In this document: piece after piece, positions 21,471 to 56,865 of the stretch
Layout of the letters: each line of letters starts with the position of its first letter
Position numbering within the stretch: the first letter of the stretch is position 1
DNA from: Octopus bimaculoides
Lineage: Eukaryota
Assembly: GCF_001194135.2 (NCBI RefSeq)
Contig: NC_068984.1
Location: 144,641,118 to 144,705,117 of the forward strand
Direction of reading: 5' to 3'
DNA length: 64,000 nt
Program-made: the position numbers and the translations under genes
Notes under the pieces: model-generated
Told to the model about the DNA's origin: nothing
Seen by the model: the letters and a program-made list of their open reading frames with translations, nothing else
Databases searched by the model: none

Positions 21471-21602
21471 TCAGTCAGAAGGGGAGTTCAAACTTTCTGA
21501 TAATCGTTTTTGGTCAGATTCTTTCACGGTGTTTAGTATGGACTGCTTCACTTCAGCCGCAAGGTCAATGCCGTTGTCAAGGTGACTACACAACACCTTC
21601 AG
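21471..21602 (-). CDS. CREBL2: Paralogous CREBL2 distal terminal exon 3b (43 aa + stop)
   Basis: tctccatctatcgttgcag|CTG AAG GTG TTG TGT; phase 0. LKVLCSHLDNGIDLAAEVKQSILNTVKESDQKRLSESLNSPSD* keeps the L-K/R-x-x-C-S/T-x-L/M-D-N-G pattern of exon 3a and E-V-K of vertebrate E-I-K. Confidence 0.7.
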   Translation of the reverse strand: MKVLCSHLDNGIDLAAEVKQSILNTVKESDQKRLSESLNSPSD

Positions 21603-21740
21603 CTGCAACGATAGATGGAGACATATGTTGATAGATGCAAATGGTGAAATACACAAATAGACATTGCAATTAGATGAAAGGGACTGTAAATATGTATGTG
21701 TGTGTGAATGCATGTATATAAAAGAAGAACACAAATGGGG

Positions 21741-21835
21741 TTCAAAATTCACAACAGCTGTTTCAGAATCATTTTATTGATACATTTTCACATTACATCA
21801 TGGCAAAAACCTGCCATCATCAGGTAAATTTTGAA
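21741..21835 (-). ncRNA. Hammerhead-like motif with 12-bp stem I and expanded domain II
   Basis: Minus strand: TTCAAAATTTAC-CTGATGA-TGGCA..TGCCA+insert-GAAAC-AGCT-GTT-GTGAATTTTGAA. The flanks pair over 12 bp (one G-U), and loop III AGCT is palindromic. Confidence 0.6.
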
Positions 21836-21864
21836 TACATAAACAGGTAAGTTTTATATTGGAT

Positions 21865-22736
21865 TTAGTACCCTCCTCACCAGCACCCATCACCGACCCT
21901 ATCGCATCACCGACTCCTTCACCAGCACTTCTACCAACATCATCTGTTGCATCTCCTGCTCTCTCTGCCATTCTCTGTACATCGGACAAACAGGGCGCCG
22001 CCTGGCCAACCGATTCACGGAACACCTCCGAGACATCAACGTTTGCAATGACACGCCGGTGTCACGTCATTTCCGCTCTGCCAGTCACTCCTTGCAGCAA
22101 CACCTGTCTATGTTTGGATTGTCCATGCACAGGGGCCATCCGGACTCCCATTTGCGCCGTGAACAAGGATTAATCTTCTCTCTTCGCTCCTTTGCGCCAC
22201 ATAAGTTCAACTCCCCTCCCCTGCCTCTCTCTCTCCCCCTCCGCCCTCCCTCCTACTTCCTACCACCCACCTCTTCTCTCCTCCCACCCACTTCTCCCCT
22301 CCTGCTCTGACTCCTACTTCTCTGTACTTCTCTTCACCCCTACTCTTTCTCTTTTCTCTCTCTCTCTTCTCACTTACTCTCTTTCTATCTCTCTTACTCT
22401 CTTCCTCTCTTTCTCCTCGCCAGCATTCTCTCTCACACACACACACACACAGCTTCTCGTATTTGGATCACCGCTTCTTTCCCCATTTGTTATCTCCCCT
22501 TTTTCTTAGCTCTATGTGTGAACTTTCTGTCCGGCAGTCGCCATGATAGATCGCTGACCACAACATTCAAATTTTTTTCTCCGTGTTTTTCTCCTTGTTT
22601 TCTCCTTATTCTTTCTGTTGAAGAGCGTAGCTCGAAACGTCAAAGACTTTCTCTATTCCCGAACGTTAAACTAATACATCCTTTTGTTGTTTACACCACC
22701 TGTCCTCATCTGTTGTTGTTTTTTCGTAAATTCTCC

Positions 22737-22740
<4 letters not shown>
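21865..22740 (+). mobile_element. 5'-truncated Penelope-like retroelement: decayed GIY-YIG endonuclease C-terminus plus pLTR
   Basis: Frame from about 21900 reads YRITDSFTSTSTNIICCISCSLCHSLYIGQTGRRLANRFTEHLRDI...VSRHF...RREQGLIFSL...N. It is followed by a CT-rich tract and a hammerhead-containing tail ending at (TA)n. Confidence 0.9.
22610..22646 (+). ncRNA. Minimal type I hammerhead motif in the Penelope pLTR (variant core CUGUUGA)
   Basis: TCTTT-CTGTTGA-A-GAGC-gta-GCTC-GAAAC-GTC-AAAGA: perfect stems I and II, loopless stem III, GUC triplet. Confidence 0.75.
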
Positions 22741-22779
<39 letters not shown>

Positions 22780-23671
22780 GTTTGTGTGTATGTAAGTATT
22801 TATGTGTGCATGTATTTGTCTTTGTGACTGTCCCCACCACCACCACCACCACTTGATAACTGGTTTTGGTTTTTTTACATTGCCATAACTTAGTAGTTTG
22901 TCCAAAGAGACTGATATACTTCAGAAAAAAATAATTTGCTCGACTAAACCCTTCAAGGTGGTGCCCCAGCCTGGCCGCGGTCCAATGACTAGAACAAGTT
23001 ACAAAACTATAGTTTTTCAGAAAAGCAAAACAATAACAGCTATAAATAGTTGTTTTAAAATTTCCATTTAAATATGTAAATTTATAAACCTATCAAACCC
23101 ATTACAGCATGGAGCAATTGTGAGTGCATGGTCAAACAGACGCCAGAGAAAATATGCCAAGGTTATATAATAGCTGGCCATAACAAGAACAAGAACAATA
23201 ACAATCTCTTATATAATGGAGTGGCACAGATTTGAGTTTGGATAGAATGGCAGTGTGCGTGTGTGTGGGTGTGGGGGTATGGATGTGAGCGTGTGCGTGA
23301 GTGTGTGTGTGTGTTTGTAAGCAGTTATGTGAGAGGGTAAGTATGTGGGAACATGCATGTGTGTGTGTGCGTGTGTGTATGTAAAATGATGCATATGTAT
23401 ATGTGTGTGTATTTGTCTGTGATTATATCAGAGGGAATGTATGTGTGTGAGCGTGTATTTCTATGTCTGTGTAANNNNNNNNNNTATATATATGTCTCTT
23501 AATATAATTATACAGGAGGGTGTGTATATGTAAACGTATTTCTCTGTATGTGTGTAATTATGCATGAGGATATGTATGTGGTATGTGTTTGTGTGTGTGT
23601 GTTTACATGAGAGAGAAAGAGAGAGAGTTTGTGTGAATAAAATTATGTGAGAGTGTATACATACATACATT

Positions 23672-23721
<50 letters not shown>

Positions 23722-24027
23722 TATATTAGTATATGCATTTATGAATTTGAATTTGTGTGAAAGAAAGACAGTCTGTCAAACTGAAAGTGCTTATGTAATT
23801 ATGTGTGTGTGTGTGTGTGTGAGACCAGACTGAACTTTACTCTATATTGAAAGTAGAGAAATAGTGATTCCAAGTAACCCTGAACAGGATTATTCCATCT
23901 GTGACCATCCTGACTTTGTAGAGAATGTGTAGGACCGTAAAACTTAATATGTACTTGTGGGGTGTGATCTAAGAGATTTGGCTGTTATTACTAACAGGTT
24001 GCATGACCATATAGAAACATTCTCATT

Positions 24028-24060
24028 GATTCATCATCATCATCATCCTCATCATCATCC

Positions 24061-24128
<68 letters not shown>
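24028..24128. repeat. (CAT)n microsatellite
   Basis: Direct reading. Confidence 0.95.

Positions 24129-24129
<1 letters not shown>

Positions 24130-54917: not shown

Positions 54918-54920
<3 letters not shown>
54703..54920 (+). mobile_element. Full-length (ATT)n-tailed SINE within an (ATT)n tract
   Basis: aggcagcgagctggcag...gtagaaaggattattatt. Confidence 0.9.

Positions 54921-54999
<79 letters not shown>
54918..54999. repeat. (ATT)n to (ACT)n compound microsatellite (SINE tail)
   Basis: Direct reading. Confidence 0.95.
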
Positions 55000-55000
<1 letters not shown>

Positions 55001-55099
55001 GAAAGGAAGATGAAGGACAGCCTGAAGTGGTAAAGATGCTGAACTTCATAAATTAGCAAGACACTGTACTGGAGGAAACCTGTTCATCTGAAGCAAGCA

Positions 55100-55310
55100 T
55101 GGAAAAACATGTACAATCATAATCATCATGTAGCATCCATGTTCCATGCTGGCATAATTCTGATGGTCTGACAGGCAGTCGCAAGGATGGAGAGCTGCAC
55201 CTAACTCGAATTGTCTGTTTTGGCATAGTTTCAACCCCTGGATGCCCTTCCTAATGCCAACCACTTTACATAGTGGAATTGGTTTTTTTTTTTTTTCATG
55301 CTGCCAACAT
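55100..55310 (-). mobile_element. RTE 3'UTR-derived repeat
   Basis: Reverse core ggatgcccttcctaatgccaaccact. Confidence 0.75.
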
Positions 55311-55574
55311 TATCGGGATTGCCATGCAGCTTGCAAGACAATGAATCTTGGGGGAGGTGGGGGTTATCCTTATGCTAAGGGACAAGGGGTTAAAGTATGA
55401 GAGAAGCGATGTCGGAACAGGTTCTTCTGGAGGATCTGCATGGTTAATCATATTTAGTAGAAACGAAGGAGGATGATAAACAAATGATGAACAAGAGCTG
55501 CAAAGGGACAAAGGGTCAGAATTGAAGAGTGGATGATTGATGATGATGATGATGATGTCATTGTATCTATTAGC

Positions 55575-55775
55575 ATGAAGGTAGCAAGCTGGCAGAAAGG
55601 CTTATTGATATTTTGTCTGCTGCTATGTTCTGAGTTCAAATTTTGCAGAGGTCGATTTTGTCTTTCATTCTTTCGGGGTCGATAAATTAAGTACCAGTGA
55701 AACACTGGGGTCGACTGAAATCGACTAGTCCCCTCCCCGCCAAATTTCAGGCCCTGCGTCTATAGTAGAAAGGCT
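55575..55775 (+). mobile_element. (ATT)n-type SINE
   Basis: Close to 54703-54920. Confidence 0.85.
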
Positions 55776-56069
55776 TATATCTATTAGCAACTCTTTGGAC
55801 CTGAAGATATCAGTTCATAGTTTCTCTTTTATATCTGTCTCAAACCTACAGACTCATAAAATAGAAGCTCATCTGGATTTCCAGAGAATTTAGGCTGAAA
55901 GCCTAATACTAAGTGGCATTTAAAATCCCATAGTCTATTATTTACAATACTCTCTTACTGATGATGATAAAAGTGAAGATGATGATTGCTATAGGGATAA
56001 AGAGATATGGATGACTGAGTTCATCTTTTGCATATTGCTGGTTCTTATTTTATAGAACCGAGGTCAATA

Positions 56070-56112
<43 letters not shown>

Positions 56113-56114
<2 letters not shown>

Positions 56115-56288
56115 TTTTTGATCAGATCCCTGGGAAACCAATAGTCTATGAAAGTCAAAAAATTGTGTTGACATCAGCCGCCCACATTCTCAGGAAGTTT
56201 CTCTCCATCTAATATACATGTGCCTTAGGTCTCTGGTTGAGACCCAATCAGAAGATGAAAGAAAATGCAATTCAATCGGGAAATGATC
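56113..56288 (+). mobile_element. R4/Dong-like 3' end inserted in an (AAT)n tract
   Basis: DQIPGKPIVYESQKIVLTSAAHILRKFLSI*, flanked on both sides by (AAT)n. Confidence 0.7.
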
Positions 56289-56661
56289 ATAATAATAATA
56301 ATAATAATGGTTTCAAATTTTGGCACAAGGCCAGCAAGTTCAGGAGGTGGGGTTAAGTTGATTCCATTGACCCCTGTATTAAAGTGGTGCTTATTTTAAT
56401 GACCCCAAAAAGATGAAAGGAAAAGTCAGCCTTGGTGGATACTGCCTTATGTAATAATAATAATAATGATAATGATGAAGGTTTGTTTGTCACCAGGGCA
56501 AAGGATGAGGGAGAGAAATAATGATGAATTTCTGAGACACACGACTCTAAATGATTGTGAAGATGTTTGGTTGATTAAAACCAAATCTAGGACTTGACTG
56601 GTTACTTGTTTTTATTGATTCTGTGGGTGAGTAGTGCAAGAAATAAGGAGAAAATACTCAC

Positions 56662-56865
56662 CCGCTCAAGTTCATCCCGTAACGAAAATATCGACCTTTC
56701 TCGTAAAACAACAAGTTCTTCCAGATATTGGTAACGCAGTTTCTTCCTTGCTCGACATTCTCTTGCACTTTGTCGGCTTCTTTCTAGCCGAGCCTTCTGG
56801 TCAATCTTGGAAGGTTTTCTGCCTCTTCTACCAGCTCGTTTCACTGGCCTTTCGGCAGACATTTT
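56662..56865 (-). CDS. CREBL2: CREBL2/REPTOR-BP-like bZIP exon (204 nt; ATG at 56862)
   Basis: tttcctacag|AAA ATG TCT...GAG CGG|gtgagt. Translation KMSAERPVKRAGRRGRKPSKIDQKARLERSRQSARECRARKKLRYQYLEELVVLRERSIFSLRDELER matches the CREBL2 signature RGRKP.KID.KA.LERSRQSARECRARKKLRYQYLEELV. A short upstream coding exon is possible but was not located. Confidence 0.96.

Follow-up and report, generated by a model that had tools for sequence, protein, structure and literature searches.

CREBL2 is the mammalian orthologue of Drosophila REPTOR-BP and acts downstream of mTORC1 (PMC6934747). It is a small, TORC1-regulated bZIP factor that heterodimerises with CREBRF/REPTOR, and this is known only for the fly and for mammals (PMC6934747). 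As the DNA-binding partner in the TORC1-REPTOR nutrient response, CREBL2/REPTOR-BP has so far been treated as a small single-form protein. Here we analysed a stretch of 64,000 nucleotides (nt) from Octopus bimaculoides (contig NC_068984.1, positions 144,641,118 to 144,705,117 of the forward strand; hereafter the window), which holds the 3' two-thirds of the single CREBL2/REPTOR-BP orthologue of this species, LOC106881915. Taken as a whole, the data are with high confidence best explained by an alternative-last-exon switch that arose from an old terminal-exon duplication in a single CREBL2 gene. A literature search returned no description of alternative terminal exons of CREBL2 or REPTOR-BP, and nothing on octopus CREBL2.

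Compared with vertebrate CREBL2, the octopus gene has a basic region and zipper that are approximately 60-70% identical, and the intron before the terminal exon lies at the same position. The terminal-exon motif of the family, [YL][KR]xWCxxMDxGxIP, is found in the proximal terminal exon of the octopus gene (exon 3a) and, in a diverged form, in the distal one (exon 3b). All vertebrate products that we retrieved carry one such exon (YKQWC.AMDQGKIPSEIKALL) and their isoforms differ before or after it, whereas the octopus has two homologous alternative versions, one of them with an extra tail of about 130 amino acids. CREBL2 of the gastropod Pomacea canaliculata (RefSeq isoform X1, 158 amino acids; GenBank C0Q70_08080, 140 amino acids) resembles the octopus gene in having one bZIP exon (...REELER/gtgagt, with the slash marking the exon boundary here and below), a longer proximal exon and a distal exon of 43 amino acids, and both of its terminal exons start with Y..WC..[LV]D.G. 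It differs in its introns, which at 2 and 7 kb are far shorter than the octopus ones of 12 and 35 kb, and in a proximal exon of only 61 amino acids; the Pomacea exons are not assignable one-to-one to 3a and 3b by class-similarity scoring.

Two alternative DNA-binding-domain exons are used by CREM (PMC3285179). CREM and octopus CREBL2 are alike in that both are bZIP genes with duplicated 3' exons, used alternatively, that give isoforms with different zippers; the CREM exons swap most of the basic region and zipper, whereas the octopus exons swap the last ~1.5 heptads and the tail. A second parallel is TCF3/E2A, where E12 and E47 are made from duplicated, alternatively used exons that alter the dimerisation surface of a dimeric transcription factor. 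The TCF3/E2A exons are internal, mutually exclusive exons of the cassette type in a basic helix-loop-helix gene, in contrast to the octopus exons, which are last exons of a bZIP gene and have their own stop codons.

All gene coordinates given below for the octopus locus are read on the minus strand of the window. The features are as follows.

56865..56662, minus strand: bZIP exon; acceptor tcctacag/AAAATG at 56866/56865, Met at 56862, donor CGG/gtgagt.
56656..56661, minus strand: shared 5' splice site gtgagt, phase 0, after CGG, which encodes Arg88 (numbering of the 131- and 244-amino-acid products).
44455..56661, minus strand: intron between the bZIP exon and 3a, with gaps (runs of N) at 53301-53310 and 53896-53905.
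44455..44494, minus strand: 3a polypyrimidine tract and AG acceptor, 40 nt with 1 difference in O. vulgaris and 3 in Argonauta.
44454..43984, minus strand: proximal terminal exon 3a; acceptor ...tttttag/CTCAGACAGTGG at 44455/44454, 156 codons, TAA at 43986..43984.
21603..43983, minus strand: sequence skipped if 3b is used, consisting of the 3' untranslated region (UTR) and putative poly(A) region of 3a and of ~20 kb of intron with six N gaps.
21603..21642, minus strand: 3b polypyrimidine tract and AG acceptor, conserved in O. vulgaris and with a cag acceptor at the equal position in Argonauta.
21602..21471, minus strand: distal terminal exon 3b; acceptor ...gttgcag/CTGAAGGTG at 21603/21602, 43 codons, TGA at 21473..21471.

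One donor faces two downstream acceptors, all in phase 0. An earlier sequence-only reading had described exactly this arrangement, with a phase-0 donor CGG/gtgagt and phase-0 acceptors at 44454 and 21602 that open exons starting LRQWCTQMDNG and LKVLCSHLDNG, respectively, and its coordinates, sequences and start motifs were all reproduced. The bZIP exon translates as K-MSAERPVKRAGRRGRKPSKIDQKARLERSRQSARECRARKKLRYQYLEELVVLRERSIFSLRDELER (K followed by MSAERPVK...RDELER), its first codon being Lys. It encodes the basic region and the first four zipper heptads, is constitutive, and is entered from exons upstream of the window; its identity to human CREBL2 is 69.6% over a 69-amino-acid tblastn alignment that extends two residues beyond the exon end. 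The 5' splice site gtgagt is the same in O. vulgaris and Argonauta, Pomacea shares the intron position, and read-through open reading frames (ORFs) that retain the intron (P0004 and P0064) start with V at the donor point. The 3a frame, opening LRQWCTQMDNGHIPAGLQ..., encodes one zipper end (LRQWCTQMD-NG), a short second helix and a tail of ~130 amino acids rich in P, S, N, T and Q, and the 3b frame, opening LKVLCSHLDNGIDLAAEVK..., encodes the other zipper end (LKVLCSHLD-NG), a second helix and a 20-amino-acid Ser/acidic end. The previously reported intron lengths of 12,207 and 35,059 nt hold as written in the window, with the qualification that they include N gaps of estimated size and are themselves estimates; the O. 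vulgaris equivalents are 12,745 and 37,851 nt. The intron between the bZIP exon and 3a is colinear with its O. vulgaris equivalent, with transposon-sized indels. AATAAA/ATTAAA hexamers, which are consensus-level evidence, start 1,138 nt past the 3a stop and 665 nt past the 3b stop. Cassette-type mutually exclusive exons were considered and rejected, since 3a and 3b each close with a stop codon and hold the terminal position in every annotated product. The proposal of mutually exclusive last exons consequently stands for the products, which exclude each other by last-exon choice, and falls for the cassette type of exon.

Both products are present in public annotation and, among the entries retrieved, no octopod species has the two side by side. 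The 223-amino-acid product (bZIP exon plus 3a) equals residues 22-244 of O. bimaculoides XP_014787921.1 (isoform X1, 244 amino acids), with 3a identical to residues 89-244. Isoform X2 (XP_014787922.1, 232 amino acids) differs from X1 only in the first coding exon; the same pair of long forms is found in O. sinensis (LOC115210758). The 110-amino-acid product (bZIP exon plus 3b) matches, at 100% identity, residues 22-131 of O. vulgaris CAI9721040.1 (P0001, 131 amino acids, 100% coverage), which is named "cAMP-responsive element-binding partner-like 2", and the short form is also annotated in Argonauta hians (GAB1598263.1, P0002, 94% identical). The UniRef label of the 131-amino-acid sequence reads n=2, genus Octopus; among the look-ups made, no O. 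bimaculoides entry with this product was found.

The sizes of 223 and 110 amino acids had been counted from Met 56862. The counts were reproduced; this Met is internal, and the starts lie upstream of the window. Exact look-ups of the two products gave no match because the real proteins start in upstream exons. The alternative first coding exons (MSDPEFNLTTHIQDEEARIK or MELSSFPD) are located beyond position 64000, and a search of the window for exons 1a and 1b found neither. In O. vulgaris and Argonauta the first coding exons (MSDPEFNLTTHIQDEEARIK and MELSSFPD/MEKSDFPD) are found 30-42 kb upstream of the bZIP exon (L003 10001-10060; L005 10001-10024 and 17763-17822). The proteins are therefore 244 or 232 amino acids (long forms) and 131 or 119 amino acids (short forms), and the gene has alternative starts as well as alternative ends.

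Splicing to a 3b-type exon was observed in a messenger RNA (mRNA). The 125-amino-acid protein P0003 is present in 12 Logan contigs, and contig L001 (3,226 nt) comes from run SRR23936182, a Sepia esculenta larval RNA sequencing (RNA-seq) data set (PMC10442824). L001 contains one unbroken ORF that opens with an exon-1a-like start, continues across the bZIP exon and enters a 3b-type exon (LKSLCHDLDHGIEIPADVK...), and a 2.7-kb 3' UTR follows the 3b-type stop. The alignment of L001 DNA with the window covers the bZIP exon only, as is expected of a spliced mRNA. The bZIP-to-3b-type junction is used in the cuttlefish Sepia esculenta. Pomacea is the only case in which a single locus is annotated with the products of both junctions.

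Alignments A1 and A2 show no variation in the family-specific basic region (KLERSRQSARECRARKKLRYQYLEEL), and the best matches are named CREBL2 across animals. Pfam bZIP_2 is matched at 25.2 and 24.0 bits (gathering cut-off 22.3), and the domain crosses the exon junction in both isoforms. In ~170 CREBL2 proteins the terminal exon follows the pattern [YLW][KR]x[WL]CxxxDxGx[IV]Pxx[LI]K, which both 3a and 3b fit; both enter in phase 0 right after ...ELE[RM] and start with [YLW][KR]x[WL]CxxxDxG. When the 64 kb were translated in all six frames, a motif derived from the family ([LYFWCVM][KRQMT]..C..[LMVIA][DE].G) matched exactly twice, on the minus strand at the 3a and 3b acceptors and each time straight after AG; 200 shuffles gave a mean of 0.135 matches, and 0 after AG. 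Direct comparison by tblastn inside the window did not pair 3a with 3b at a threshold as loose as E=100, because the exons are too short and diverged, with 7 of 24 aligned residues in common. By position, phase and motif, 3a and 3b are diverged copies of an ancestral CREBL2 terminal exon. The old exon duplication previously proposed is supported by the family motif, the profile scores given below and the Sepia intermediate, and we date it further back than had been supposed, because gastropods have the same pair.

The terminal exons of three gastropods, given in the coordinates of their own loci, are as follows.

Pomacea canaliculata (L004): bZIP exon 12582-12800; proximal exon 14786-14968, 61 amino acids, RefSeq isoform X1; distal exon 20153-20281, 43 amino acids, GenBank product.
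Lottia gigantea (L008): proximal exon 10800-11360, 187 amino acids; distal exon 15601-15723, 41 amino acids, acceptor ttgtttcag/.
Gigantopelta aegis (L006): proximal exon 12014-12907, 298 amino acids; distal exon 21055-21171, 39 amino acids, E=4e-7, acceptor tttctag/.

All three show the octopus-like layout of a longer proximal and a ~40-amino-acid distal terminal exon. The distal exons of Lottia and Gigantopelta are in phase 0, have good acceptors and lie outside the protein models retrieved. The Lottia protein model is partial, and the proximal terminal ORF extends past the model's end to 11360. The long tails of Lottia, Haliotis and Gigantopelta (L008 10800-11360; P0122, P0155) share a C-terminal module, SW[YL]..L..E...R.G..S..GTP...LP[ST]V..D.LD.S. 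No locus was obtained for Haliotis P0122 or Littorina P0051. A word-index search with 3a alone returned the Octopus cluster only, and an exhaustive HMMER search with 3a added one further relative, a 148-amino-acid Logan ORF (P0186/P0187, 7 contigs). This ORF aligns colinearly with 3a, with 36% identity between MD-GHIPAGLQ and the stop, and is most simply read as a candidate 3a-type exon of a distant cephalopod. The pair probably arose by an old exon duplication before the octopod-decapodiform split. The shared architecture argues that it probably also predates the split between gastropods and cephalopods, with a single origin.

Several observations weigh against this account. The octopod short form is known only from gene models of sister species, and no Octopus Logan transcript in the collection carries either full-length isoform. 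Octopus 3b was missed in genome scans by both a vertebrate-dominated profile and a non-cephalopod invertebrate profile (E>1 for the latter), and the direct statistical support for its homology is weak. Over a span of the gene plus 10 kb, only one terminal exon each was seen in the bivalves Mya and Dreissena, the annelid Lamellibrachia and the hemichordate Saccoglossus. The C-terminal motif of the gastropod long tails (SW..L...GTP...LP[ST]V..D.LD) is without a clear counterpart in the octopus 3a tail, and the BLOSUM score of 3a is higher against the distal exons of gastropods (48.7) than against their proximal exons (40.0). Any functional difference between the isoforms is wholly an inference.

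The single exons of bivalves, annelid and hemichordate, the missing tail motif and the BLOSUM scores would fit convergence, in which cephalopods and gastropods duplicated the CREBL2 terminal exon separately and the octopus pair arose newly in cephalopods or coleoids. By score, the cephalopod exons do not fall into the proximal and distal classes of the gastropods, and one shared duplication is therefore not demonstrated. Set against convergence is the architecture common to four lineages: a single bZIP exon, the same phase-0 junction and two terminal exons, of which the proximal one is longer and the distal one encodes 39-43 amino acids. C-x-Q is common to all proximal exons, 3a included, and similarity among gastropod exons is higher within a class than across classes (56 vs. 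45). We consider separate duplications doubtful, if far from negligible, and prefer a single duplication in the common ancestor of gastropods and cephalopods. With only 7 of 24 residues common to 3a and 3b, their split is old in either case.

As 3b was missed by the profiles in genome scans, it was scored directly against shuffles. The profile for exon scoring was built without cephalopods, and significance was assessed with 2000 shuffles, whose maxima were 9-13 bits. Exon 3a scored 28.8 bits (0/2000 shuffles reached this score) and was also found by the non-cephalopod profile at E=1.3e-6. The Sepia 3b-type exon scored 17.6 bits (0/2000), and octopus 3b scored 6.7 bits (8/2000). Octopus 3b differs from the family by W to L and by a one-residue indel after D-N-G. 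This low score, the failure in the scans and the indel are what would be seen if 3b were an unrelated exonised sequence that by chance continues the helix with L-K-x-x-C-x-x-L-D-x-G. We find this very improbable. Octopus 3b shares phase, junction and core positions with the family (L at d, C at a, L at d, D-x-G), only 8 of the 2000 shuffles reached its score, and none reached that of the orthologous Sepia exon. The single exons of bivalves (WKTLC.., WKNLC.., LKTFC..) have its K-x-L/F-C form, and by chance the family motif is expected 0.135 times per window and essentially never straight after AG. Octopus 3b is best described as a diverged copy, whose membership in the family rests on position, phase, motif and the Sepia intermediate.

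Substitutions were counted between O. bimaculoides and two further octopods. In the comparison with O. vulgaris there were 2 synonymous and 0 non-synonymous changes in the bZIP exon, 1 and 0 in 3b (132 nt), and 8 and 7 in 3a. In the comparison with Argonauta there were 32 synonymous and 2 non-synonymous changes in the bZIP exon and 15 and 10 in 3b (nucleotide differences). The 300 nt of intron upstream of 3b are 86.7% identical between O. bimaculoides and O. vulgaris. The 3a frame is intact in O. vulgaris (96% amino acid identity), and Argonauta has an open 157-codon frame (66%). The donor and the two acceptors have been kept by all three octopods. Three regions were compared between Octopus and Argonauta, and the alignable DNA in them consisted of the three exons, repeats and three short segments (63-216 nt) from introns or the 3' flank, with 3b forming an island of DNA conservation. 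Judged by these substitution patterns, both terminal exons are under coding constraint. The search for conservation in other cephalopod and mollusc genomes, suggested in the sequence-only reading, thus found both exons conserved and coding in O. vulgaris and Argonauta. An unconserved pseudo-exon is made very unlikely for 3b by the 1 synonymous and 0 non-synonymous changes relative to O. vulgaris, the intact acceptor and the use of a 3b-type exon in Sepia mRNA.

Exon 3b could be conserved and still be unused in O. bimaculoides, or the short models of O. vulgaris and Argonauta could be prediction artefacts, in which case only the long isoform would be made here. The look-ups without a 131-amino-acid O. 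bimaculoides entry would agree with this, as would a collection without an Octopus contig carrying the short ORF. We give this explanation little credence: 3b shows 0 amino acid changes and 1 synonymous change relative to O. vulgaris next to an intron that is 13% diverged, its acceptor is intact, and its frame is under purifying selection to Argonauta. Moreover, spliced Sepia mRNAs (12 contigs) use the orthologous exon, and the UniRef label counts the 131-amino-acid sequence twice (n=2) across the genus Octopus.

The window contains twelve runs of N, all of them intronic or otherwise outside the three exons, and none touches an exon. A gap-free O. vulgaris segment (L003, OX597817.1) is colinear with the window from 64000 to ~15000, across all gaps, with most blocks at 82-92% identity; the O. 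vulgaris intervals matching the gaps between 3a and 3b measure about 97, 0, 1,517 and 1,772 bp. With tblastn, the window, the O. vulgaris locus (99.8 kb) and the gap-free Argonauta hians locus (106 kb) each yielded a single bZIP exon, and exon order is the same in the three species. A third copy of the terminal exon was searched for in the octopod loci and none was found. Since the colinear, gap-free sister loci hold one bZIP exon, there is no hidden paralog as far as the sister genomes allow. The earlier statement that no second bZIP exon lies between 3a and 3b is confirmed in the window and in the sister loci, and the question that the N gaps had raised is answered in the same way. Splicing of 3b to a different bZIP exon is likewise very unlikely, as 3b follows the single bZIP exon in the sister gene models and in the Sepia mRNA. 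A tandem paralog, in which 3b would be part of another CREBL2-like gene and one of the six N gaps between 21.6 and 44 kb would conceal the bZIP exon of that gene, can practically be discounted, given that the colinear O. vulgaris and Argonauta loci lack a second bZIP exon, that tblastn finds nothing bZIP-like in the O. vulgaris intervals matching the gaps, and that O. vulgaris and Argonauta gene models as well as Sepia mRNA connect 3b to the one bZIP exon.

In the alternative-last-exon switch that we propose, the bZIP donor would be joined to the 3a acceptor, with cleavage and polyadenylation after 3a, to give the long protein (244 or 232 amino acids). On the second route transcription would continue ~23 kb further and the same donor would be joined to 3b, giving the short protein (131 or 119 amino acids). 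Splice choice would be coupled to the choice of poly(A) site.

AlphaFold2 predicted the same succession for both isoforms: one helix from residue 43 to 97 that spans the junction, then a break at N-G, then another short helix. The tail of ~130 amino acids in 3a, with pLDDT (predicted local distance difference test) below 50 and 49% S/T/P/N/Q, is probably disordered. In the canonical bZIP register, the terminal exons supply the last zipper core positions, L89 (d), the invariant C93 (a) and M96/L96 (d), and the isoforms differ at positions e (R/K90), g (W/L92), b and c. These differences in core and flanking zipper residues, together with the tail carried by 3a alone, uphold the earlier view that the two exons change the zipper end and the presence of a long tail. 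The codons for Cys93 are at window positions 44440-44442 (3a) and 21588-21590 (3b). This Cys, at core position a of the last heptad, is nearly invariant in animal CREBL2, and a redox-sensitive interchain disulfide is conceivable there.

Because the basic region is constant in both isoforms, DNA-binding specificity is presumably unchanged. The isoforms may differ in dimer stability, in partner preference (homodimer vs. CREBRF/REPTOR) or in regulation or activation borne by the tail. A bolder and rather improbable proposal is that of a switch inherited from an ancestral mollusc and retained by gastropods and cephalopods over more than 500 million years, in which rewiring of the last zipper heptad and tail would lead to different partners (homodimer vs. 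CREBRF/REPTOR) or to opposite transcriptional output downstream of TORC1. If true, it would constitute a regulatory layer absent from flies and vertebrates, the sole animals in which the pathway has been studied. With two forms that have the DNA-binding region in common but not the end of the dimerisation helix or the tail, the molluscan gene offers a testable handle on isoform-specific partner choice. The analysis also flags exons missing from current annotation, those of the O. bimaculoides short form and the distal exons of Lottia and Gigantopelta. Otherwise the locus is a routine case of alternative last exons from exon duplication, with both octopus products already in public databases; the deep conservation across molluscan classes is the one aspect beyond the ordinary, and is mildly surprising.

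A RING-finger (zf-C3HC4) gene is located just downstream of CREBL2 in Pomacea (L004 30008-30284, plus strand) and in Lottia (L008 19595-20892, minus strand), which suggests conserved microsynteny in gastropods. In the window, a 27-nt tandem repeat (12.4 copies, 93% matches) occupies 42333-42666, 1.3-1.65 kb past the 3a stop, and probably lies inside or just after the 3' UTR of the long isoform. An ORF fragment (..WFLQDGATAHTARETKQLL.., 27747-27889, minus strand) adjoins the N gap at 26800-27746 and by eye resembles the end of a DDE transposase; a Pfam search with this fragment gave no match. Large lineage-specific indels in the first intron (window 53906-56297; L003 53952-59434) comprise ~2.4 kb present only in O. 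bimaculoides and ~5.5 kb present only in O. vulgaris, and one edge coincides with the 10-N gap at 53896-53905. A SINE-like element (short interspersed nuclear element) of ~71 nt is found at 58280-58350, in the intron upstream of the bZIP exon, and again at 63406-63437 on the plus strand. Ten copies at 91-98% identity are spread across the Argonauta locus, which is striking for an interspersed repeat between two octopod families.

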